From positions 186,001 through 250,000 of the IMG/VR virus record IMGVR_UViG_3300032288_004964: a DNA stretch of 64,000 bases. One strand, written 5' to 3'. The notes beneath the pieces were generated by a model that saw only the letters and a list, made by a program, of their open reading frames with translations, did no database searches and was not told the DNA's origin. Shown piece by piece: positions 6,501 through 64,000 of the stretch. Positions within the stretch are counted from its first letter, which is position 1; each line of letters opens with the position of its first letter. Position numbers and translations under genes: made by a program.

Positions 6501-8240
6501 ATGTTAATTAATGAACTAGGAATCAGAGGATTCAAAAGTTATGGCAATAACGAACAAATTTTAAAACTAAATACAGAAAGGGGGGAATTAATTCTCCTTG
6601 TTGGTAATAATGGTGCTGGTAAATCATCACTATTAGATTCATTTGATTATACAATTTACGGTAAAGTAAGAGGCCGTAAAAAAAGATGGGCTACACTTTC
6701 TACTCTGCCAAACCGTATAAACGGTGAACTATTAAATCGCATTAAATTTATTTCTAATGGAACTGAAGTTGAAATTAAAAGAGGTATATCTCCTAGTGTA
6801 TTAGAACTTTGGGAAAATGGAATTCTAAATGAAAGAGCCGGTAAATCTAATATAGATGAAAAGATTGAAGGATATGTTGGAATGGATATAGAAACATTCA
6901 AATCCTTTATCTCAATGTCAATAAATGATTTCAAAAATTTTATTTCACTTTCAAATGAAGAAAAACAATTACTACTTGATAAGTTATTTAACTTAGAAGT
7001 AATTAACATTCTTAACAATATCCTAAAAGATATTAACAAGAATAATAAAATCAGAATGGCTTCTCTGGATTCTGAAATCAGAACTTTAGATGATTCTATT
7101 GCTTCTATTAAAAGATCCATAGATAAAGCTATTGAAAGAGAAAAAGAAGAAGCTAGATTAGCAGCAGAAAGAGAAAAAGAAGATATTCAATCTGAAATTG
7201 ATAAGTTAGTTGAGGAAATGAACTCTAAAAAAGATGATTATAAAAGTCTTAAAGATAAGATGGATAAAATCAAAGAAAAAGAGAATGAACTCAATGAAGA
7301 GATTGATAAAGAAAAGAAGCAATATATCAATTGTCAAAATGATATTAAAAATGTTCAAAGAGAATTAGATTTATATGATTCTGGTAAATGTCCTACTTGT
7401 AAAACTGATTTTGATTCAGAACACTTTTCTAATTTAAGAACCGCTTTAGAAGAAAAGAAAAAAGGATTTGAAGATATTAAACTTGAAATTGAAGAGAATA
7501 TTAAAAAAGTTAAAGAAAGACAAGTTAAGTTAAAAACACTTTCTGAAAGCACAACAACTGCTTTTAATGATTTAAGTTATTTATTGAAAAATTACAAATC
7601 AGATATTGATAAGTTAACACAAAAGAAAGCTAATCAATCTGCTCAACCTGTTACAAAATCATCTGTTAATGTTCAAGAGTTTCAAAATACAATTACTGAA
7701 CTTGAAGATAAAAAAACAATTAGCTCAGATAGTGTTACTGTTTGTAAAGAGAAAGAACTTTACTACAAGGAAATGAATAGAATATTTGGTGAAGATGGTG
7801 TTAAAAAATCAATTATTGCTGGTATTATTAAACCAATCAACCACTTTATTTCCGAGAATATTAAGAAGATGGGTCTTAACTTTGAAGTTAAGTTAGATGA
7901 AACATTCACCGCTGAAATTAGACAATTAGGTTCAGTTATTGAACATGATTCTTTATCAACTGGAGAAACTAAAAAGATAAATATTGGCATCTTAATTGCT
8001 TACTTAAAATTAATTAGAACTAAGCGTCATATCAACATACTTTTCTTAGATGAGGTTTTCTCTTCAATTGACATAGAAGGTATAGATTCTATTTTGGCTC
8101 TCTTAAAATCATTTGCAAATGATTATAACATCAATATATTTGTTGTTCATCATGCTATTTTGAATCAAGAAATGTTTGATAGAATTCTGAAAATTAATAA
8201 AGAGGTTTTTTCTTCCATAGAGGAAGTTGTTTATGAATAA
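6501..8240 (+). CDS. Rad50/SbcC/T4 gp46-like recombination ATPase
   Basis: Walker A GNNGAGKSS, coiled coils with Zn-hook CPTC, signature LSTGE, Walker B LFLDEVFS and D-loop. Confidence 0.9.
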   Translation: MLINELGIRGFKSYGNNEQILKLNTERGELILLVGNNGAGKSSLLDSFDYTIYGKVRGRKKRWATLSTLPNRINGELLNRIKFISNGTEVEIKRGISPSVLELWENGILNERAGKSNIDEKIEGYVGMDIETFKSFISMSINDFKNFISLSNEEKQLLLDKLFNLEVINILNNILKDINKNNKIRMASLDSEIRTLDDSIASIKRSIDKAIEREKEEARLAAEREKEDIQSEIDKLVEEMNSKKDDYKSLKDKMDKIKEKENELNEEIDKEKKQYINCQNDIKNVQRELDLYDSGKCPTCKTDFDSEHFSNLRTALEEKKKGFEDIKLEIEENIKKVKERQVKLKTLSESTTTAFNDLSYLLKNYKSDIDKLTQKKANQSAQPVTKSSVNVQEFQNTITELEDKKTISSDSVTVCKEKELYYKEMNRIFGEDGVKKSIIAGIIKPINHFISENIKKMGLNFEVKLDETFTAEIRQLGSVIEHDSLSTGETKKINIGILIAYLKLIRTKRHINILFLDEVFSSIDIEGIDSILALLKSFANDYNINIFVVHHAILNQEMFDRILKINKEVFSSIEEVVYE

Positions 8241-45926: not shown

Positions 45927-47795
45927 ATGATAGAACAATTAAAAGAACAGATTATTAAAGCCAATGATGCTTATCGCTCTGGTAAATCTATAATTTCAGA
46001 TGTTAAATATGACCAACTAATTGAAGAATTATCTTTACTATCACCTGATGATGAACTACTTACAAAAGTAGGACATGTGGTTGTTGATGAAACTCGTAAG
46101 AGTAAACTACCTATTGAAATGGCTTCAATGAATAAAATTAAGTCTATGGGAGACATAGATAATTGGACTCGTCTTAAAGGAATAAATCAAAATGAATTAG
46201 TTATAATGACACCTAAGTTTGATGGTCTTTCTCTTTGTGTTAAAGAAGATGATAATGAAGCTTGGACTCGTGGTGATGGTGAATTTGGTCAAAAATCTGA
46301 CGAACACTATAAACTAATTCAAAATCACTTATATGAAGATGGATTTACTGATGATACAACCGATCCATTTGCACCCATTGAATTCAAATATACTTATGGT
46401 GAGGTGATGATGCCTAAGAAAGTATTCATTGATAAATATTCTACTGACTTTGCTAATCCAAGAAACTTGGTAGCTGGTCTTATTAATAATAAAGAAGCTA
46501 CAAATCCTTTATCAGATTGTCAGTATATTAAATATGGTGGAATGCCTTCCAAAGCTTTTAATCCAAAAACTAAAAAAGAAATACTTGATACTCTTAACAA
46601 TGGCCAGAGAAGTAAAGTAAACTATCATATCTGTAAAGTTTCTGAATTAACAGAAGAACTACTAATCGGATTATTCCATAAGTGGTCTGTTGATTTTGAA
46701 ATTGATGGAATTATTATTGAAATTAATGACTTAACATTACAAAATAAATTAGGTCGCGAAACCTCATCAAACAATCCTGTTTGGGCTCGCGCTTTCAAAC
46801 ATCCTTCTTTTGAACAATCTGCTGAAACAGATGTTATTGGAATCTCTTGGAATATTTCTAAACAAGGTTTATTAAAACCAACTCTACATATTAATCCTGT
46901 TAAATTAGACGGTGTTACAGTGTCTAATGTTACTGGTAACAATGCTCGTTTTGTAAAAGACTTAGGACTTGGTGTAGGTGCTAAAGTAGTTGTAAAACGC
47001 TCAGGAATGGTTATTCCAATCATTGCTGATGTTATCAAACCCGTTGATTTTGTTCAACCTACTATTGATGGAGTTGAAATAGATTGGAATGAGGCTGGCA
47101 TTGAGTTAATTACTTTAACAGAAACTGACGATCAAAAATTAAAAAAGATTGTTGCTTTCTTTGAAATCTTAGAAGCAGACAATGTGTCAGAAGGAGTTAT
47201 TACTCAACTATGGGATGCTGGTTATAAAACAATAAAAGATATTTTAAGTCTAAAAACTTCTGACTTAGAAAAAATTGACAGATTTGGTAAGCGTAAGGCT
47301 CAAATTGTTTTTGATTCAATTCAAAAATCTGTTAGTAATGTTCAGTTGTCTAAACTACAACACGCTACTGGTATCTTCAAAGGATTAGGATCTAAGAAAT
47401 TAGTTCTTTTAGAAGATTTCAAAACTAAACCAACTATTGACCAAGTAATGTCAATTGAAGGATTTGCTGAAGTATCTGCTAAATCATATATTGATTCATA
47501 TGATGTATTCTTTGATTTTATCAAAGATTTGCCTGTCACAATTGTAGAAAAAGTAGAAGCTGCAAAAGTTGGCACGGATCTTGATGGTAAACAATTTGTA
47601 TTTACTGGAGTAAGACGTGCTGATTTAGAATCAGTTATTGAATCCCGTGGTGGTAAGATTGGTAGTGGTGTATCTAAAAATACAACATATTTAGTTATGA
47701 AAGCAGTAGGTAGTGGTTCTTCTAAAGAGAAGAAGGCTATTGAATTGGGAGTACAAGTTATTACAGTTGAACAATTAGAAAAATTATTATCATGA
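45927..47795 (+). CDS. ligA: NAD-dependent DNA ligase
   Basis: Adenylation motif PKFDG, TRGDGEFG, NPRNLVAG, EIDGIII, OB fold (RSGMVIP), HhH motifs, C-terminal BRCT (GKQFVFTG...GVSKNT); no Zn-finger cysteines. Confidence 0.92.
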   Translation: MIEQLKEQIIKANDAYRSGKSIISDVKYDQLIEELSLLSPDDELLTKVGHVVVDETRKSKLPIEMASMNKIKSMGDIDNWTRLKGINQNELVIMTPKFDGLSLCVKEDDNEAWTRGDGEFGQKSDEHYKLIQNHLYEDGFTDDTTDPFAPIEFKYTYGEVMMPKKVFIDKYSTDFANPRNLVAGLINNKEATNPLSDCQYIKYGGMPSKAFNPKTKKEILDTLNNGQRSKVNYHICKVSELTEELLIGLFHKWSVDFEIDGIIIEINDLTLQNKLGRETSSNNPVWARAFKHPSFEQSAETDVIGISWNISKQGLLKPTLHINPVKLDGVTVSNVTGNNARFVKDLGLGVGAKVVVKRSGMVIPIIADVIKPVDFVQPTIDGVEIDWNEAGIELITLTETDDQKLKKIVAFFEILEADNVSEGVITQLWDAGYKTIKDILSLKTSDLEKIDRFGKRKAQIVFDSIQKSVSNVQLSKLQHATGIFKGLGSKKLVLLEDFKTKPTIDQVMSIEGFAEVSAKSYIDSYDVFFDFIKDLPVTIVEKVEAAKVGTDLDGKQFVFTGVRRADLESVIESRGGKIGSGVSKNTTYLVMKAVGSGSSKEKKAIELGVQVITVEQLEKLLS

Positions 47796-49606: not shown

Positions 49607-49739
49607 AGGAGTTGAAACTTTTTTATATATATTTTATATAAATTATTCCAATAAACGGAAATTAACGGCAATAAAAAGAAATTAAAAACCCAAATTGATA
49701 GCTAATAAAGGCAGTCAACAAAAAAATAAATGGCAATAT

Positions 49740-50348
49740 ATGCAATCTAAAGCAAAGACAACAATTCTATTCTCTGAACAAGAGAAAGTTTTCAAAGAAA
49801 GAACAGGAAAAGACTTTAACAGTCTTTACACAAAGTACTACCCTAAATTAGTTTACTTCACTTCTAAAATCTGTAATGATACTCAAAAAGCTGAAGACAT
49901 TTCAACAGAATCATTTTTATCAGCATTTGATAAAATTGAAAAATATGAAAAAGACAAATCACAATTTTCTACTTGGCTTTTTACAATAGCCAAAAACTTA
50001 GCACTTCAAGAAATTAAAATTCAAAAGAAAACAACTTCTATGGATCTTGAATATGATGAGGAAGGAACAACTATGAAAGACTTTATTCAAGAAGATGAAG
50101 ACTATTCATATCTACATGAGGTACATGCTAAAAAGGCAGATATCATGAAAAGTAAAATATCTCAATTAAAAAACCCATATAAAAAGGTGATTGAAATGAG
50201 AGAAATTAAAAAGATGTCATATAAAGATATCTCTGATGAATTAAATCTTAATTTATCAACAGTTAAATCACAAATTAGAAACGGAAGAGCTATCCTTATC
50301 AAAGAAACTCAAAAGGAATTTGATGAGATAGATGAAATGTATTTATAA
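49740..50348 (+). CDS. Sigma-70-family (ECF-like) RNA polymerase sigma factor
   Basis: Likely start ATG 49740; region 2 ([16 protein letters not shown]...[11 protein letters not shown]) and region 4 ([24 protein letters not shown]). Confidence 0.85.
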
Positions 50349-50362
50349 ATAATAAATACCTT

Positions 50363-50450
50363 GGAGAAATGGCAGAGTGGTCGATTGCGGCAGTCTTGAA
50401 AACTGTTGAACCGTGAGGTTCCTGGGGTTCGAATCCCTATTTCTCCGCCA
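50363..50450 (+). tRNA. tRNA-Ser(UGA), canonical type II
   Basis: GGAGAAA/TTTCTCC acceptor, CT-TGA-AA loop, long variable arm, TTCGAAT T-loop, G73 and encoded CCA. Confidence 0.95.
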
Positions 50451-57441: not shown

Positions 57442-58029
57442 ATGTTGTAGATTACAAAACAAGAATTAAGTCAAAAAATGACTGAATGTTATCAGACCAA
57501 AGGTCAGTCTGTTTTAGAACACGGCATTTCAGTTAAAAATTACTTATTTGATTTAGTCAATCATTTAAGAAGTAATGATCCATTACAATATGAATGGAAT
57601 CTACCAGATTGGTTATTGCAAAATAAAGACCTTATTTTATCATCATCACCAGATGATGAAACTCTAGAACTATACACAGTCTATCATGATTGTGGTAAAC
57701 CCTTTTGTACAGAAATAGATGAAAATGGTAAGAGACATTTTCCAAATCACGCGGAAGTATCTTATAACTATTTCAACCAAGTATTTAGTAACCCAGTCGC
57801 TGCAGATTTAATACTACATGATATGGACATTCATTTATTGAAATCCGATGGTGTTGTAGAATTCTGTCAGAATCCTCAAGCTTTAACTTTATTATTAACA
57901 GGTTTAGCCGAGTTACATTCAAATGCTCAAATGTTTGGTGGTACTCAATCAACCTCTTTCAAGATTAAATGGAAGAGTATTAATCAAAGAGGTAAACAAA
58001 TTATTAATCAACTAAAAAATAAAAACTAA
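57442..58029 (+). CDS. HD-domain hydrolase; probable true start 57442 with in-frame TAG at codon 3
   Basis: EHG...YHDCGKPF...HFPNHAEVS...HDMDIH motifs; ATG TTG TAG ATT is in frame with the annotated ATG at 57478. Confidence 0.7.
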
Positions 58030-58417: not shown

Positions 58418-58449
58418 TTTGGTGGGTTAAAAAATTCATCTTATATTTG
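58418..58449 (+). promoter_or_regulatory. Bacteroidota-type sigma-A promoter (-33/-7)
   Basis: TTTG, 20-nt spacer, TATATTTG. Confidence 0.7.
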
Positions 58450-58455
58450 TATTCA

Positions 58456-58535
58456 TAAGGGTGTTAGTATAATACGCAAAACTTAATTATGATAAGCGCT
58501 TCCCATCTCGAAGGATAAAATCATAACCCTTTTTT
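58456..58535 (+). ncRNA. Candidate stand-alone small RNA of about 80 nt
   Basis: Starts about 7 nt after the -7 element; 5' AAGGG pairs with 3' CCCTT, TTATGAT pairs with ATCATAA, ends in a T-run. Confidence 0.45.
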
Positions 58536-58643
58536 GAAAAAAAATTAAAAAATATTAGGTAGATATAAAACTTTTATCTATATTTGTATAAAATAAGAAA
58601 AAAATAACAAAAGAGAGAATAATTTTTTAATATATAAGAAATA

Positions 58644-58739
58644 ATGACAACAATTCGCACACATAAACATTTTAGTAAATCGAGTAAGTGGTTTAGTCTC
58701 CACGGGTTCGGTACTAATAGCGTATTGTTTAAATTTTAA
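58644..58739 (+). promoter_or_regulatory. His/Phe/Trp(/Lys)-containing leader peptide MTTIRTHKHFSKSSKWFSLHGFGTNSVLFKF
   Basis: 31-aa ORF after TATATTTG (58579-86) and TAATATATA (58628-36), upstream of a terminator and tRNA-His/Phe/His/Trp. Confidence 0.75.
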
Positions 58740-58774
58740 GTATGATAAAATTATAAATTGACAATATTCAAATT

Positions 58775-58810
58775 AAGTCCGAACTAAAAAGTTCGGACTT
58801 TTTTGTTTTT
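58775..58810 (+). terminator. Intrinsic terminator (attenuator) directly upstream of the first tRNA
   Basis: AAGTCCGAACT-AAAA-AGTTCGGACTT perfect 11-bp stem plus TTTTGTTTTT, 4 nt before tRNA-His. Confidence 0.85.
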
Positions 58811-58814
58811 ATAT

Positions 58815-58906
58815 GGTATCGTTAATGTTAGCGGTTAGTGTTGAGAAATCAACCAGCATATGGCTCTGTGAAAGCCAAGGGATGGATTCGAATTCCATAC
58901 GATACC
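58815..58906 (+). tRNA. tRNA-His(GUG) with G-1 and a hairpin insertion in the D-loop
   Basis: GGTATCGT/ACGATACC, TGGCT-CTGTGAA-AGCCA, ATGGA-TTCGAAT-TCCAT; D-loop contains GTTGA-GAAA-TCAAC. Confidence 0.85.
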
Positions 58907-58911
58907 CAAAA

Positions 58912-58987
58912 GGAACCTAAGCTAATCAGGTGAAAGCACTAGACTGAAAATCTAGGGAGCCCGGATCGATACCGGGAGGTTCCACCA
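58912..58987 (+). tRNA. tRNA-Phe(GAA)
   Basis: GGAACCT/AGGTTCC, CTAGA-CTGAAAA-TCTAG, CCCGG-ATCGATA-CCGGG, encoded ACCA. Confidence 0.92.
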
Positions 58988-58993
58988 AAATAT

Positions 58994-59067
58994 GGTGTGT
59001 GTAGCTCAATCGGTAGAGCGTTGGTTTGTGGAGCCAAAGGCAGCGGGATCGTAACCCGTCACACACC
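58994..59067 (+). tRNA. tRNA-His(GUG), second copy
   Basis: GGTGTGTG/CACACACC (G-1:C73), GCTC/GAGC D-stem, TTGGT-TTGTGGA-GCCAA, GCGGG-ATCGTAA-CCCGT. Confidence 0.9.
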
Positions 59068-59185
59068 CTGTAAGGATGGTAATCCCCTACTTTGAGTGAA
59101 AAGTAACGATGTGACGACAATCACAGAAGAGTGAAAAGTAACAAAAAAAGTAAAATTGTACTCCTCTCTTGTCGGAGAGGTAAAT

Positions 59186-59256
59186 ACGTCATACAGACAA
59201 GGTGTCGGTCAGGTCTCCAAAACCTCGATGGCTGGGTTCGATTCCTGGATGGCGTG
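59186..59256 (+). tRNA. tRNA-Trp(CCA)
   Basis: ACGTCAT/ATGGCGT acceptor, AGGT-CTCCAAA-ACCT, CTGGG-TTCGATT-CCTGG, G73. Confidence 0.85.
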
Positions 59257-59262
59257 CAAAAA

Positions 59263-59307
59263 ATGAAATATAAAAAAATGAAAACTAAAATGAAATATAA
59301 ACGATAG
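59263..59307 (+). promoter_or_regulatory. Lys-rich mini-ORF MKYKKMKTKMKYKR followed by an 11-bp hairpin, upstream of three tRNA-Lys genes
   Basis: 7 AAA codons in 14; stop TAG overlaps GGCAACGGTTC-ATAC-GGATCGTTGCC (59307-59332). Confidence 0.45.
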
Positions 59308-59345
59308 GCAACGGTTCATACGGATCGTTGCCCAAACAAGACAAT

Positions 59346-59418
59346 GATTCCGTAGCTCAATTGGTGGAGCTTCTGGCTTTTAACCAGAAGGTTGTGGGTT
59401 CAAACCCCACCGGGATCA
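59346..59418 (+). tRNA. tRNA-Lys(UUU), canonical type I
   Basis: GATTCCG/CGGGATC, TCTGG-CTTTTAA-CCAGA, GTGGG-TTCAAAC-CCCAC. Confidence 0.92.
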
Positions 59419-59427
59419 CTAAAAATA

Positions 59428-59512
59428 GATCCTGTCGCTTAGCGGCTATAGCAACTGGCTTTTAACCAGTAGAGAGAAATCTCAACCGTGGGTTCGAGTC
59501 CCACCAGGATCA
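59428..59512 (+). tRNA. tRNA-Lys(UUU) with long variable arm
   Basis: GATCCTG/CAGGATC, ACTGG-CTTTTAA-CCAGT, 17-nt variable region A-GAGA-GAAA-TCTC-AACC. Confidence 0.88.
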
Positions 59513-59517
59513 CTAAA

Positions 59518-59598
59518 GCTTTCGTCGCTTAGTGGCTATAGCAACTGGCTCTTAACCAGTCGAGAAATCAACCGTGGGTTCGAGTCCCACCGAAAGCA
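59518..59598 (+). tRNA. tRNA-Lys(CUU) with extended variable arm
   Basis: GCTTTCG/CGAAAGC, ACTGG-CTCTTAA-CCAGT, 13-nt variable region C-GA-GAAA-TC-AACC. Confidence 0.88.
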
Positions 59599-59607
59599 CA
59601 AATATAT

Positions 59608-59737
59608 GGGGAGTTAGCTCAGTGGTAGAGTATATATAACCTCTTTTGAAATTTTACCTCACAAGAGTGTTGATTAAAAGAGTTACTTCGTTTGAATTGA
59701 AATCAAAAGGTCATAGGTTCGAATCCTATACTCCCCG
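59608..59737 (+). tRNA. Interrupted tRNA-like gene of uncertain identity, with a 58-nt insertion between the D-arm and anticodon arm
   Basis: GGGGAGT/ACTCCCC acceptor, GCTC-AGTGGTA-GAGT D-arm, ATAGG-TTCGAAT-CCTAT T-arm, TTTGA-ATTGAAA-TCAAA arm. Confidence 0.6.
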
Positions 59738-59756
59738 CAAAAAAGAAAAATAAATT

Positions 59757-59831
59757 ATGAAAAATATTAATACATCAAAGTCGTCAAGTAGTCGCTCGTC
59801 AAGAATGAGTGAGATTCGATTGTATTCATAA
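59757..59831 (+). promoter_or_regulatory. Ser/Arg-rich leader peptide MKNINTSKSSSSRSSRMSEIRLYS
   Basis: 24 aa with 9 Ser and 3 Arg codons, upstream of a terminator and tRNA-Arg plus three tRNA-Ser. Confidence 0.8.
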
Positions 59832-59850
59832 TAGTCAGAAGATATTTATG

Positions 59851-59888
59851 AAACCCTCGAATCTAATGATTTGAGGGTTTTTTATTTT
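59851..59888 (+). terminator. Intrinsic terminator (attenuator) directly upstream of tRNA-Arg
   Basis: AAACCCTCGAATC-TAAT-GATTTGAGGGTTT 13-bp stem (one G-U) plus TTTATTTT. Confidence 0.85.
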
Positions 59889-59893
59889 AATAT

Positions 59894-59967
59894 GGTTCCA
59901 TCGTTCAACTGGATAGGACACTCGGCTACGAACCGAGAGATTGGGGATTCGAATTCCTCTGGAACTA
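59894..59967 (+). tRNA. tRNA-Arg(ACG)
   Basis: GGTTCCA/TGGAACT, CTCGG-CTACGAA-CCGAG, GGGGA-TTCGAAT-TCCTC. Confidence 0.92.
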
Positions 59968-59972
59968 CAAAA

Positions 59973-60059
59973 GGAAAAGTAACTTAGCCGGCGCTAAGCA
60001 CAGTCTTGAAAACTGCTGGTACCTACGGGTATGGGGATCGACACCTCACTTTTTCGCCA
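59973..60059 (+). tRNA. tRNA-Ser(UGA), atypical (6-bp D-stem, can fold 8/4)
   Basis: GGAAAAGT/ACTTTTTC, CTTAGC-CGGC-GCTAAG, CAGT-CTTGAAA-ACTG, long variable arm, GCCA end. Confidence 0.85.
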
Positions 60060-60062
60060 AAT

Positions 60063-60148
60063 GGAGAGTAATCTAGTCTGGTGACTAGCACCGCCTGCTA
60101 AGCGTGTGGTACGTTTAATCGTATGGAGTTCAATTCTTCTACTCTCCG
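60063..60148 (+). tRNA. tRNA-Ser(GCU), 8/4 cloverleaf
   Basis: GGAGAGTA/TACTCTCC 8-bp acceptor, GGAG-TTCAATT-CTTC 4-bp T-stem, CTAGTC-TGGT-GACTAG D-arm, CT-GCT-AA loop. Confidence 0.85.
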
Positions 60149-60153
60149 CAAAA

Positions 60154-60239
60154 GGAAGATAATCTAGTCTGGTGACTAGCCACGCCTGGAAAGCGTTGGG
60201 TGCGTTCAATCGCATGGGATTCGATTTCTCTATCTTCCG
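60154..60239 (+). tRNA. tRNA-Ser(GGA), 8/4 cloverleaf
   Basis: GGAAGATA/TATCTTCC 8-bp acceptor, GGGA-TTCGATT-TCTC 4-bp T-stem, same D-arm, CT-GGA-AA loop. Confidence 0.85.
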
Positions 60240-60242
60240 CAA

Positions 60243-60958: not shown

Positions 60959-63900
60959 CTAATCATATACTCTTATTTCAATTGATGCTCCCATGAGGCC
61001 GTCAACTAATACATTAAAATTGAAATAAGTAGCTAATAATATTTGAGATGTATAAACTGCCGGTACAACTGTTCTATCAGGTGCTGCAGTATTAGTAATA
61101 AAAACAACACATTTAGTTGGATCAAACAACACATTTGTTGCTTGATAGACACCAGTTGATACATAGTCCCATGTTGGATTAAATCCAAGTGTATTTTTAA
61201 AAACCTGTGTTGTTGTTAATGATGATGTAACACCATATCCATTACCAATTAGATTGGCAACATATACTTTATATCCATTGGATAAATTAGATGATGCTGT
61301 CCAAGTACCAACACCATTAGTATCAGATACTAAAACATAACCATCTGATTGTGTTGTATCTTCTAATCTAAATGCTCCTGATTGTGTAGCATAAACATGC
61401 AATTTAGCAGTAGATGATGCTGTTCCTATACCCACTTGACCATTAAATACATATTTATGTAGAGTACCAGATTCTCCAAAATTAAATTCATTATCTTGTG
61501 TAGTTATAGAATTATATCCAATTGCCCAAGAGTTATTATGTGATGACACAGCATTTCTACCTATTGCTACACCTCTAACACTTGAGTTAACAGTCGATGA
61601 TCTACCAATTGCTATACCATCTGTTGTACCTGAAACAATATTTGAAAATAAACCAACCGCTATACCATCATCAGATGAGACTACACCAGACCCAATAGCA
61701 ATAGCTCCACCATTTCCAGAGTCATTAAGTGTATTACCATTACCTATTGATATATTAGGTGCTCCAAATCCTTGACTCATCTTAATAGCTGTATAAGATC
61801 CAATATTATATGAACTAGAAAGTCCTGATAATTTAATATTACCACTTACTTCTAATTTTTCGGAAGGAGTTGTGGTTCCAATTCCAACATTTGAGCCAGT
61901 TACATAAATAGAACTTGTTGATGAAAGTGTTGTAGATGATGTATAATAAGGCACATAATTAGTACTTCCTGATAATGAAGTGCTTGATGTTGCTATCAAT
62001 AATCCATCAACACTTACTGCTACAAGACAAGAAACTGATGATGTCATAGATGTTATAATGATATCATTAGCATGAGCCGTATATTGTCTACTTGCGGTTA
62101 TGTTAGATCCTAAAATAGAAGATCCTGTCATACCATTTGTAGTATTATTACATCCACCAATTATAGAACCAAATGGTGCATTTGAAGTATTACAATAACC
62201 CCCACCTATAGCAGAATAAGATGAGCAATATCCAGAAATTGTATTTTGTTGACCACCTCCTATTGTTGAAAATGATGAATTAGTACCTGATATTGTATTT
62301 GCTATACCACCTCCTATTGTTGAATTAATTGAAGAATACCCAGAGATTGTATTTGAATTACCACCATTTATAGTTGAGTGATACGAATAATAACCTGAGA
62401 TTGTATTTTGTTGACCACCACCTATATTTGAGTTATTTGAATATTGACCACTTATTGAGTTTAATGATCCACCATTTATAGTTGAGTTGTATGAGTTGAA
62501 TCCAGATATTGTATTTTGTTGACCACCTCCTACTGTTGAACTATATGAATTAAATCCAGATATTGTATTTAATGTACCACCGCTTATAGTTGATCTATAT
62601 GAATTTGTACCAGATATTACGTTTTGAACACCTCCGCTTATAGTTGAGCAATGTGAATAAGTACCACATATTTTGTTTAAGCGTCCGCCTCCTATTGTTG
62701 AATCTATTGAGCAGTATCCAGATATTTCGTTTTGTCTACCACCAGATATAGTTGATTGATGAGAGAATTGACCTGAGATTGTATTTTGACATCCACCACT
62801 TATAGTTGAAGAGTTACTAGTAGCTCCAGAGATAATATTACAAGAACCTCCACTTATTGTTGAATAATATGAAATATTTCCAGAGATTAAATTACAATAT
62901 CCACCGCTTATAGTTGAAATAGTAGAAGTATTACCAGAGATTGTATTAAGTTTACCACCACCTATAAATGATTGATATGAGTAAAGACCAGAAACTATAT
63001 TATAATAACCACCACTTATAGTTGAAAAACATGAATTGGTACCAGAAATTGAATTAGATCTACCACCGCTTATAGTTGAATATTCCGAATTAATTCCAGA
63101 TATTATATTGGCGTTTCCTCCTCCTATTGCTGAAAAAAATGAGTTAGAACCAGAGATTGTATTACAAGAACCTCCTCCTATTGTCGAATTATCTGAATTA
63201 GGACCAGATATTGTGTTCGTCTGTCCACCGGATATAGTAGAGTAATATGAATTAATTCCAGAAATTGTATTATCACATCCACCACTTATAGTTGATTGAT
63301 ATGAATTTGTACCTGAAATTTTATTTAATTGACCACCAGATATAGTGGAATAATAAGAAGATTTACCAGAGATTGTATTAGTACTACCACCACCTATAGC
63401 TGAGTAATATGAACATTCTCCAGAGATTGTATTTGTTAGACCACCACTTATTGTAGATCTATATGAATTTGTACCTGAAATTATATTATTATAACCCCCA
63501 CCTATAGTAGAAGAATCTGAATTATATCCTGATATTGTATTAGTACCACCACCACTTATAGTTGATTGATATGAATAACAACCAGAGATTGTATTAGTAC
63601 TACCACCACTTATAGTTGATTTTTGTGAGTAAAAACCAGAGATTGTATTAGTACTACCACCACTTATAGTTGATTTTTGTGAATAATATCCAGATATTGT
63701 ATTTTGCTGACCACCTCCTATAGTTGATAAGCACGCACTGTAGTATGATGAAACTGTATTACAACATCCACCACTTATAGTTGATAAACATGAACTCTCT
63801 ATACAATTACAATAACCACCACTTATAGTTGAACAATTTGAGCTAGATATATAATTAAAATAACCACCACTTATAGTTGATCTATATGAATAAGAGCAGA

Positions 63901-64000
63901 TCATATTTGCTTCACCACCACTTATAGTTGATAAGCATGAGTCAGTTATACAATTATTCCAACCGCCGCCTATATTAGAGTAATTTGATGCTCTTATTGT
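60959..64000 (-). CDS. Tail fibre/adhesin-like protein with many STISGGxxNxISG repeats and a YadA-head-like segment; 5' end truncated by the window
   Basis: Frame remains open from 63904 to 64000; about 17-18-aa tandem repeats, AIAIG/GIAVG/GIAIG/GVAIG motifs, NVGIGTTTPSEKLEV motif. Confidence 0.75.
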   Translation of the reverse strand, partial: TIRASNYSNIGGGWNNCITDSCLSTISGGEANMICSYSYRSTISGGYFNYISSSNCSTISGGYCNCIESSCLSTISGGCCNTVSSYYSACLSTIGGGQQNTISGYYSQKSTISGGSTNTISGFYSQKSTISGGSTNTISGCYSYQSTISGGGTNTISGYNSDSSTIGGGYNNIISGTNSYRSTISGGLTNTISGECSYYSAIGGGSTNTISGKSSYYSTISGGQLNKISGTNSYQSTISGGCDNTISGINSYYSTISGGQTNTISGPNSDNSTIGGGSCNTISGSNSFFSAIGGGNANIISGINSEYSTISGGRSNSISGTNSCFSTISGGYYNIVSGLYSYQSFIGGGKLNTISGNTSTISTISGGYCNLISGNISYYSTISGGSCNIISGATSNSSTISGGCQNTISGQFSHQSTISGGRQNEISGYCSIDSTIGGGRLNKICGTYSHCSTISGGVQNVISGTNSYRSTISGGTLNTISGFNSYSSTVGGGQQNTISGFNSYNSTINGGSLNSISGQYSNNSNIGGGQQNTISGYYSYHSTINGGNSNTISGYSSINSTIGGGIANTISGTNSSFSTIGGGQQNTISGYCSSYSAIGGGYCNTSNAPFGSIIGGCNNTTNGMTGSSILGSNITASRQYTAHANDIIITSMTSSVSCLVAVSVDGLLIATSSTSLSGSTNYVPYYTSSTTLSSTSSIYVTGSNVGIGTTTPSEKLEVSGNIKLSGLSSSYNIGSYTAIKMSQGFGAPNISIGNGNTLNDSGNGGAIAIGSGVVSSDDGIAVGLFSNIVSGTTDGIAIGRSSTVNSSVRGVAIGRNAVSSHNNSWAIGYNSITTQDNEFNFGESGTLHKYVFNGQVGIGTASSTAKLHVYATQSGAFRLEDTTQSDGYVLVSDTNGVGTWTASSNLSNGYKVYVANLIGNGYGVTSSLTTTQVFKNTLGFNPTWDYVSTGVYQATNVLFDPTKCVVFITNTAAPDRTVVPAVYTSQILLATYFNFNVLVDGLMGASIEIRVYD

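Follow-up and report, generated by a model that had tools for sequence, protein, structure and literature searches.

Predicted leader-peptide attenuators preceding tRNA genes in a clade of very large freshwater phages

Some phage genomes contain dozens of tRNA genes, and the question arises of how these genes are kept silent when they are not needed. One tRNA array lies in a 64,000-nucleotide stretch of the IMG/VR record IMGVR_UViG_3300032288_004964 (positions 186,001 to 250,000; hereafter the window). In this array, blocks of tRNA genes follow short open reading frames whose codons appear to be the ones read by those tRNAs. The first-pass annotation proposed that the blocks are controlled by leader-peptide attenuators, and the current work examined whether the arrangement is real, whether it is maintained in relatives, and which mechanism explains it best.

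Structure of the tRNA array

All three blocks of leader and tRNA genes were confirmed at 58.6-60.2 kb, on the plus strand. Transcription of the first block is expected to start from a Bacteroidota-type promoter (58555-58586), read from the sequence as a -33-like TTAG (58555-58558) and a -7 box TATATTTG (58579-58586), 20 nt apart. A conserved 21-nt block comprising part of the 5' UTR and the start codon (58627-58647) leads into leader ORF 1 (58644-58739, 31 codons), in which the control codons 7-18 (58662-58697) spell H K H F S K S S K W F S. An antiterminator segment, region 2 (58704-58715), lies inside the ORF and is predicted by duplex calculation to pair with the 5' arm (58777-58785) of an intrinsic terminator with an 11-bp stem and a T-run (58775-58810). 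In the full-length fold, region 2 pairs with the control-codon segment.

Four tRNA genes follow. The first, tRNA-His(GTG) (58815-58906), was missed by both ARAGORN and Rfam because a hairpin is inserted after the D arm; it aligns to the ARAGORN-called His(GTG) of two relatives and has the anticodon GTG and G-1:C73. It is followed by tRNA-Phe(GAA) (58912-58987) and a second tRNA-His(GTG) (58995-59068), both found by ARAGORN at default settings and by Rfam, and by a weak-scoring tRNA-Trp(CCA) (59186-59257), which was found by relaxed ARAGORN and by Rfam (23.7 bits) and whose homolog was called in one of the same relatives.

The second block begins with a Lys-rich mini-ORF (59263-59307), whose conserved core (59278-59307) encodes M K T K M K Y K R and is found before tRNA-Lys in 11 unique loci. 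An 11-bp hairpin (59307-59332) starts at the last base of its stop codon, and five unrelated stem sequences in relatives keep a hairpin of 11-12 bp at the same position. This hairpin has no U-tract, so that the element is not a canonical attenuator, a point on which the first-pass annotation needs qualification. Three tRNA-Lys genes follow (59346-59599), with anticodons TTT (74 nt), TTT (86 nt) and CTT (82 nt), of which the last two carry an extra variable arm. A fourth gene not noted in the first-pass annotation, a tRNA-like gene of unknown identity (59608-59738), lies between the Lys block and the next leader. It contains a structured insert of about 45 nt between the D arm and the anticodon arm, and is conserved with compensatory changes in two related loci.

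The third block consists of leader ORF 3 (59757-59831, 24 codons), with control codons 7-16 (59775-59804) spelling S K S S S S R S S R, a region 2 (59812-59819) complementary to the terminator 5' arm (59857-59864), and an intrinsic terminator with a 14-bp stem and a T-run (59850-59889). It precedes tRNA-Arg(ACG) (59894-59968) and three type-II tRNA-Ser genes (59973-60240), namely TGA (59973-60059), GCT (60062-60148) and GGA (60154-60240). ARAGORN at default settings found the Arg and the three Lys genes; relaxed settings added Ser(TGA) and Ser(GGA), and Rfam alignments show the anticodon loops UGA, GCU and GGA. Leaders of this type are conserved before Arg(ACG) and Ser tRNAs in 9 loci.

Short ORFs are frequent in AT-rich DNA, and 61 ORFs of 20 or more codons overlap this 4 kb. 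Nevertheless, codons 7-18 of leader 1 are 12 of 12 decodable by the tRNAs of the array, against a background of 0.243 (p about 4e-8), and this is the only run of 10 or more in all six frames of the window. Codons 7-15 of leader 3 are 9 of 9 decodable. Leader 1 was first described as rich in His, Phe and Trp (and Lys) codons; it also carries Ser and Lys codons, so it samples the whole array. Terminator-like hairpins with T-runs, including those at 58775-58800 and 59850-59881, number 8 in the region against 1.8 expected, and the full leader folds have z-scores of -4.3 and -5.1. Long ORFs are intact under code 11 and the leaders end in TAA, TAG or TGA interchangeably, so the standard code was kept.

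Leaders and tRNAs in related phages

The first-pass annotation proposed testing whether leader codon content tracks the downstream anticodons across relatives, and it does. An initial scan of viral contigs with a 17-nt AT-rich pattern was too unspecific, giving 47 loci of which only three and the window's own contig were related. An exact-match scan with the conserved 21-nt block retrieved about 60 related leaders in metagenome and viral contigs; a group with the leader M-K-R-K-G-V-K-K and two further loci, which have a different context and no tRNAs, were discarded as chance matches. A scan of genome contigs returned only two chance hits, a transporter start in a Bacteroidales MAG and a gammaproteobacterial gene, and gave no host clue.

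About 60 related contigs and two phage genomes of 634-642 kb share the same promoter and 5' UTR but carry different leaders, each in front of the matching tRNAs. All 53 unique homologous upstream regions have TAnnTTTG 54-67 nt before the leader ATG, and 46 of 53 have TTTG/TTAG 15-26 nt further upstream. An ATG-to-stop ORF of 15-38 codons (or the Lys mini-ORF, 9-11 codons) with a conserved A-rich 5' context is present in every homolog. The leader classes are H/F/W/K/S, Q/P/D and L/N/I/T/M/V/C/R; K, S/R and Q; and Y/E and I/G/A, the last two in LR745206. The Y/E class was confirmed there because, in another locus with a Y/S/E leader, the first downstream tRNA could not be typed by ARAGORN. A cross-class matrix is diagonal, with 0.50, 0.38 and 0.73 on the diagonal against 0.00-0.24 off it. 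In complete class-3 arrays, 94-100% of core codons are decodable, down to separate Leu isoacceptor codons, against a 40% background. The true assignment of 8 leaders to 8 tRNA units is the single best of 40,320 permutations. Unrelated AT-rich phage loci were also tried as a negative control, but they hold essentially no tRNAs and the control failed. Some control positions hold codons with no matching tRNA in the same array, such as Asn in some class-1 leaders, AGA in leader 3 of the window, and N/V/I in class-2 leaders.

The ORF of leader 1 is open in all homologs and its control block is nearly invariant at the nucleotide level, whereas leader sequence is poorly conserved outside the control codons and region 2. 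Every leader ORF also holds a copy of its terminator's 3' arm, the antiterminator, and this copy changes together with the terminator across lineages. Examples are GTTCGG/CCGAAC, ATTCGA/TCGAAT, GAACTTGG/CCAAGTTC and TCTGAGGGTT/AACCCTCAGA. Own-arm duplexes average -11.9 kcal/mol against -7.8 for other arms, and 0 of 200,000 reassignments do as well. A GTTCG motif raised the possibility that region 2 and the terminators derive from tRNA T-arms; other classes use unrelated sequences, and this was rejected. The gap between the terminator and the first tRNA is 2-18 nt in 35 of 49 loci, which leaves no space for a tRNA promoter. Moreover, an initiator-like tRNA-Met, which elongation stalling cannot sense, sits behind the same promoter and UTR start without any leader.

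A proposed attenuation mechanism and its alternatives

These observations, drawn from sequence and folding models alone, are probably best explained by ribosome-mediated transcription attenuation in which the regulated genes are tRNAs. In this model, a ribosome translates the short leader while the polymerase proceeds. If the control codons are read quickly, the ribosome runs onto region 2 before the terminator is finished, the terminator hairpin forms, and the tRNA genes are not transcribed. If the ribosome stalls because a cognate charged tRNA is scarce, region 2 stays free and pairs with the terminator's 5' arm, the polymerase reads through, and new tRNA then relieves the stall. The result would be a negative feedback loop that holds decoding capacity for each codon set. 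In the window, leader 1 would gate the whole operon (His, Phe, Trp, Lys and, further on, Ser codons), and leader 3 would be a second gate for Arg and Ser. The Lys mini-ORF does not fit this model.

Folding with a ribosome footprint on transcripts cut before the terminator's 3' arm is consistent with such a switch. The antiterminator is predicted (P 0.8-1.0) while the A site is on any control codon and is lost (P 0.1-0.4) once the ribosome passes the last one, and this boundary coincides with the end of the control codons in all seven classes tested. Truncated transcripts were used as a kinetic proxy because equilibrium folding with the full terminator showed no switch except in class 3; the full terminator wins in most classes, so the switch must be kinetic, as it is in trp. 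In several classes region 2 lies 19-31 nt before the stop codon, a ribosome parked at the stop no longer covers it, and the model then predicts the antiterminator again. Shut-off therefore depends on timing or steric effects beyond the reach of the calculation. Untranslated leaders are predicted to read through, unlike trp.

The same attenuator might instead report amino-acid starvation or host growth state, with the phage tuning tRNA transcription to host physiology. This is possible, though less likely: stalling reports charged tRNA rather than tRNA as such, and nothing in the data distinguishes low charging from low tRNA abundance. However, more tRNA does not relieve amino-acid starvation, so the loop would have no corrective effect, and the leaders sample individual isoacceptor codons (four different Leu codons, three Ser codon families) that match the isoacceptors encoded downstream, which fits sensing of tRNA species better. 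A reversed logic, in which efficient leader translation is needed for readthrough, for example because a stalled ribosome uncouples from the polymerase, appears unlikely. The Lys hairpin, which abuts the stop codon and would be melted only by a ribosome completing the ORF, fits such a translation-dependent step, but in the terminator-bearing leaders the region complementary to the terminator's 5' arm lies downstream of the control codons and is predicted to be free exactly when the ribosome sits on them, favoring readthrough on stalling.

Very little weight is given to an RNA-only sensor in which the codon track pairs with tRNA anticodons without translation. The track does match the downstream anticodons, but in all of about 60 copies it lies in frame between an ATG in a conserved A-rich context and a stop codon, and it holds 10-17 different codons rather than one specifier. 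An Rfam scan at E up to 1 gave no T-box hit; the only hits were sub-threshold matches to His_leader and Thr_leader over the terminators (28.0 bits against a gathering threshold of 49 and 22.3 bits against 55), a resemblance in architecture only. It is equally improbable that the ORFs are micro-protein genes or chance ORFs, each with its own terminator, beside separately transcribed tRNAs. The permutation tests, the poor conservation outside the control codons and region 2, the short gaps to the first tRNA, and the reuse of one promoter and UTR with different control codons all argue against it.

Relation to known attenuators and biological meaning

The leader-peptide attenuators of amino-acid biosynthetic operons (trpL, hisL, pheL and leuL of enterobacteria) have a short translated leader with regulatory codons, mutually exclusive antiterminator and terminator hairpins, the choice between which is set by ribosome position, and an intrinsic terminator immediately before the regulated genes. 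In the phage elements the output is tRNA genes rather than biosynthetic enzymes, the control block is a mixed sampler of 3-9 amino acids rather than a run of one, region 2 lies well inside the ORF, and the system is phage-encoded with Bacteroidota-type promoters. The thr leader (Thr and Ile codons) and the ilvGMEDA leader (Leu, Val and Ile codons) also sense several amino acids at once, but there the mix reflects shared pathway end products, whereas here it reflects the list of tRNA genes in the operon. The pheST attenuator of E. coli (pheM leader) may offer a related case, in which a component of the translation apparatus handling the sensed tRNA is controlled; its output would be the synthetase, however, and a single amino acid would be sensed. 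T-box riboswitches likewise read the status of a specific tRNA through codon-anticodon recognition, but bind uncharged tRNA directly with one specifier codon and need no ribosome. Clusters of tRNA genes also occur in T4, T5 and the crAss-like Bacteroides phage DAC15, some thought to replace host tRNAs that are depleted or cleaved; no leader ORF or terminator precedes the DAC15 tRNA genes inspected. No description of leader-peptide control of tRNA genes was found in the literature searched, and the huge-phage paper PMC7162821 does not mention it.

The first-pass annotation suggested loss of specific tRNAs, for example by host anticodon nucleases, or phage codon demand as the trigger; this is inference only, and the part played by host tRNA nucleases is speculation. 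A wider reading, which remains tentative, is that huge Bacteroidota phages run a codon-by-codon tRNA homeostat. A set of modular attenuators, together covering all 20 amino acids, would monitor the speed at which ribosomes of the infected cell read each codon family, and would switch on the matching phage tRNA operon when host tRNAs are depleted, for example by anticodon nucleases, by host shut-off or by the phage's own AT-rich codon demand. The tRNAs delivered include structurally unusual versions, such as class-I tRNAs with an extra arm, that may escape host tRNA-targeting defences.

tRNA genes are generally thought to be controlled at the promoter, through growth rate and stringent control, and by processing. 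A leader peptide that tests the ability of the cell to read particular codons and then releases transcription of exactly those tRNAs would be a new regulatory logic built on a textbook mechanism, with direct feedback from decoding capacity to tRNA supply. Each leader lists the codons its array is meant to serve, which helps with tRNAs too atypical for standard predictors, and the leaders offer a ready-made family of modular, codon-specific sensors of translation speed. For the phages themselves, such control would explain how genomes with dozens of tRNA genes avoid making them when they are not needed, and it links tRNA arrays to the conflict over host tRNAs, including cleavage, depletion and codon bias.

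Organization of the tRNA array and its leaders

The window is a low-G+C phage region belonging to contig IMGVR_UViG_3300032288_004964 (385 kb). Between 58.5 and 60.3 kb, all on the + strand, a promoter of the Bacteroidota type (TTAG at 58555-58558 and TATATTTG at 58579-58586) is followed by a 5' UTR of about 55 nt, leader ORF 1 (58644-58739, 31 codons) and an 11-bp hairpin with a T-run (58775-58810). Five bases later the tRNA genes begin with tRNA-His, Phe and His, then a 117-nt spacer and Trp. A Lys-rich mini-ORF (59263/59278-59307) with a hairpin (59307-59332) precedes three tRNA-Lys and a tRNA-like gene with a large insert (59608-59738). Leader ORF 3 (59757-59831, 24 codons) and a 14-bp hairpin with a T-run (59850-59889) are then followed by tRNA-Arg(ACG), Ser(TGA), Ser(GCT) and Ser(GGA), ending at 60240. 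The arrangement reported in the first-pass annotation, in which each block of tRNA genes lies behind a short ORF rich in the amino acids of the tRNAs that follow, is thus confirmed.

Only six of these tRNAs were detected by ARAGORN at default settings. The rest were recovered with relaxed settings, with Rfam and by homology, because several are structurally unusual. Many tRNAs of families that normally lack a long variable arm (Lys, Asn, Cys, Gln, Pro, Thr, Val, Met) occur in these arrays, in the window and in related loci L050-L121, in two forms: a canonical 72-77 nt version and an 82-95 nt version with an extra arm. Most Leu(TAA) genes, by contrast, are short. In the window, the same small hairpin motif (GAGAAATC core) forms the extra arm of two tRNA-Lys (59428-59513 and 59518-59599) and is inserted after the D arm of the first tRNA-His (58815-58906). 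The tRNA-like gene at 59608-59738 has normal acceptor, D and T arms but a structured insert of about 45 nt between the D arm and the anticodon arm. It is conserved, with compensatory changes, at the same position in two relatives (L068:11601-11733 and L083:8782-8911, - strand); its anticodon loop reads AUUGAAA in the window but seems to be 8-9 nt long in the relatives. The spacer between tRNA-His and tRNA-Trp (59069-59185) holds a direct repeat (GAGTGAAAAGTAAC, twice) and two small hairpins, and no homologue of it was found in any of the fetched loci.

At 58430-58560, directly upstream of the leader-1 promoter, a second Bacteroidota-type promoter (TATATTTG near 58444-58451) is followed by a non-coding stretch of about 90 nt ending in a short hairpin and T-run. 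This stretch is 96% identical in related locus L084 only and may be a small RNA. The surrounding genes include an HD-domain protein immediately upstream of the array (57478-58029), an ECF-type sigma factor (49695-50348) ending just before a lone tRNA-Ser(TGA) at 50363-50450, an NAD-dependent DNA ligase (45927-47795) and an SbcC/Rad50-like ATPase (6501-8240). A 981-aa ORF at 60959-63904 (- strand) is made of dozens of Ser/Gly/Thr/Asn-rich repeats of about 20 residues with a recurring S-T-I-S-G-G motif, and is probably a fibre or surface protein.

Correspondence between leader codons and downstream tRNAs

With simple wobble rules, the nine anticodons of the array read 24.3% of the codons in the long ORFs of the window. 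Codons 7-18 of leader 1 (H K H F S K S S K W F S), however, are all readable by the tRNAs of the array (p about 4e-8), and this is the only run of ten or more such codons in any of the six frames of the 64 kb window. Codons 7-15 of leader 3 (S K S S S S R S S) are also all readable, and they use codons of all three Ser isoacceptor families plus CGC for Arg(ACG). Moreover, terminator-like sites are enriched in the region, with 8 found against 1.8 expected.

The array region matches two unannotated "uncultured phage" genomes of 634,780 and 642,428 bp (LR745206 and LR756502) at 70-75% identity. Their sizes correspond to the Mahaphage clade of Al-Shayeb et al. 2020, whose members were predicted to infect Bacteroidetes (PMC7162821). 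All three leaders are conserved in those genomes. A 21-nt block spanning the end of the 5' UTR and the start codon is identical in all of them. An exact scan of metagenome contigs with that block returned 72 loci, mostly from freshwater lakes, of which about 60 are true relatives. In LR756502, an ORF carrying the KMSKS motif of class I aminoacyl-tRNA synthetases, TrpRS/TyrRS-like by eye, is embedded in the tRNA array between the Lys block and the S/R block (locus L002:4425-5140).

The relatives share the promoter, the UTR and the first few codons, but fall into classes with different central codons, and each class precedes a different tRNA set. The H/F/W/K/S leaders are followed by Phe, His, Trp and Lys; the Q/P/D leaders by Gln, Pro and Asp; and the L/N/I/T/M/V/C/R leaders (class 3) by Leu (four anticodons), Asn, Ile, Thr, Met, Val, Cys and Arg(TCT). 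The K mini-ORF precedes Lys, the S/R leaders Arg(ACG) and Ser, the Q-run leaders Gln, and the Y/E leaders Tyr and Glu. The I/G/A leader is followed by Ile(TAT), Gly(TCC) and a CAT tRNA, with Gly(GCC) and Ala(TGC) lying 2.5 kb further on. Together the classes cover all 20 amino acids.

The cross-class matrix of decodable core codons is diagonal (0.50, 0.38 and 0.73 against 0.00-0.24). In complete class-3 arrays, 94-100% of core codons are decodable against 40% background, and the four different Leu codons in the leader correspond to the four Leu anticodons. When whole ORFs were used, with no choice of a core, the true assignment of eight leaders to eight tRNA units was the single best of all 40,320 permutations. 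There are also hints of co-variation within a class: related locus L055 lacks the initial Leu tRNAs and has fewer Leu and more Arg codons, while L052 has an Arg codon in place of His, and Arg(ACG) sits in the same block. Some control positions, however, carry codons without a tRNA in the same array. An initiator-like tRNA-Met in LR745206 (L124:18871-18943) sits behind the same promoter/UTR start but has no leader ORF and no terminator, as would be expected because elongation stalling cannot sense an initiator tRNA. The first-pass annotation had proposed testing whether leader codon content tracks the downstream anticodons across related phages, and its interpretation of the leaders as attenuators is supported by this comparison.

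Attenuator anatomy

In every class, the 3' part of the leader ORF contains a near copy of the 3' arm of the terminator. This segment (region 2) can pair with the 5' arm of the terminator (region 3). When the terminator stem differs between lineages, region 2 differs with it, as in GTTCGG/CCGAAC, ATTCGA/TCGAAT, GAACTTGG/CCAAGTTC, AATCCGA/TCGGATT, GACTAAC/GTTAGTC, AGATTGA/TCAATCT and TCTGAGGGTT/AACCCTCAGA. Across 12 lineages with distinct stems, predicted duplexes between an ORF and its own 5' arm average -11.9 kcal/mol, against -7.8 for other arms, and none of 200,000 random reassignments did as well. In the full-length folds of the two window leaders, region 2 is paired with the control-codon segment (a 1:2 helix) and the terminator is formed, with z-scores of -4.3 and -5.1.

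All 53 unique upstream regions carry TAnnTTTG 54-67 nt before the ATG. The first tRNA begins 2-18 nt after the T-run in 35 of 49 loci, and the larger values are cases in which ARAGORN misses an atypical first tRNA. The tRNAs can therefore only be transcribed by reading through the terminator.

The Lys mini-ORF does not fit this scheme. It is conserved in 11 unique loci and is always followed by an 11-12 bp hairpin that begins at the last base of the stop codon (59307-59332 in the window). The hairpin is built from five unrelated sequences and is never followed by a U-tract. It is clearly selected, but it is not a canonical attenuator; a terminating ribosome would have to melt it, and it may act in processing, pausing or U-less termination.

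Proposed mechanism and relation to known attenuators

The mechanism matches leader-peptide attenuation of amino-acid operons, in particular the multivalent thr and ilv leaders, and in spirit it resembles the pheM-pheST attenuator and T-boxes. The regulated genes and the resulting logic, however, are different. The element is not a member of any Rfam leader family or of the T-box family. A crAss-like Bacteroides phage, DAC15, shows no such leaders before the tRNA genes inspected. No description of leader-peptide control of tRNA genes was found in a full-text literature search, although most subscription-journal papers lay outside its reach and an earlier report cannot be excluded.

With the full terminator present, equilibrium folding favors the terminator in most classes. 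This is also true of the trp attenuator, so the choice must be made kinetically. As a proxy, transcripts ending before the 3' arm of the terminator were folded with a ribosome footprint blocked at each A-site position. In all classes tested, region 3 is predicted to be paired (antiterminator, P 0.8-1.0) while the ribosome sits on any control codon, and becomes free (P 0.1-0.4) as soon as the ribosome moves past the last control codon onto region 2. The switch point falls after F17 in window leader 1, after R17 in the S/R leader, after D19 in Q/P/D, after I21 in class 3, after I12 in the Q leader and after R15 in Y/S/E, which is exactly at the end of each control block.

Stalling on cognate codons is therefore predicted to favor readthrough, and smooth translation to favor termination. 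Translation of the leaders and the timing between polymerase and ribosome are inferred in this model, as is the behavior of a ribosome parked at the stop codon, which lies 19-31 nt downstream of region 2 in the main classes. The physiological trigger suggested in the first-pass annotation, loss of specific functional tRNAs through host anticodon nucleases or phage codon demand, remains speculative. In the window, leader 3 has no promoter of its own, whereas in LR745206 it has one. Here, then, leader 1, which also carries Ser and Lys codons, most likely gates the whole operon, and leader 3 is a second gate. With tRNA genes as the output, such an arrangement would make a negative feedback loop on decoding capacity.
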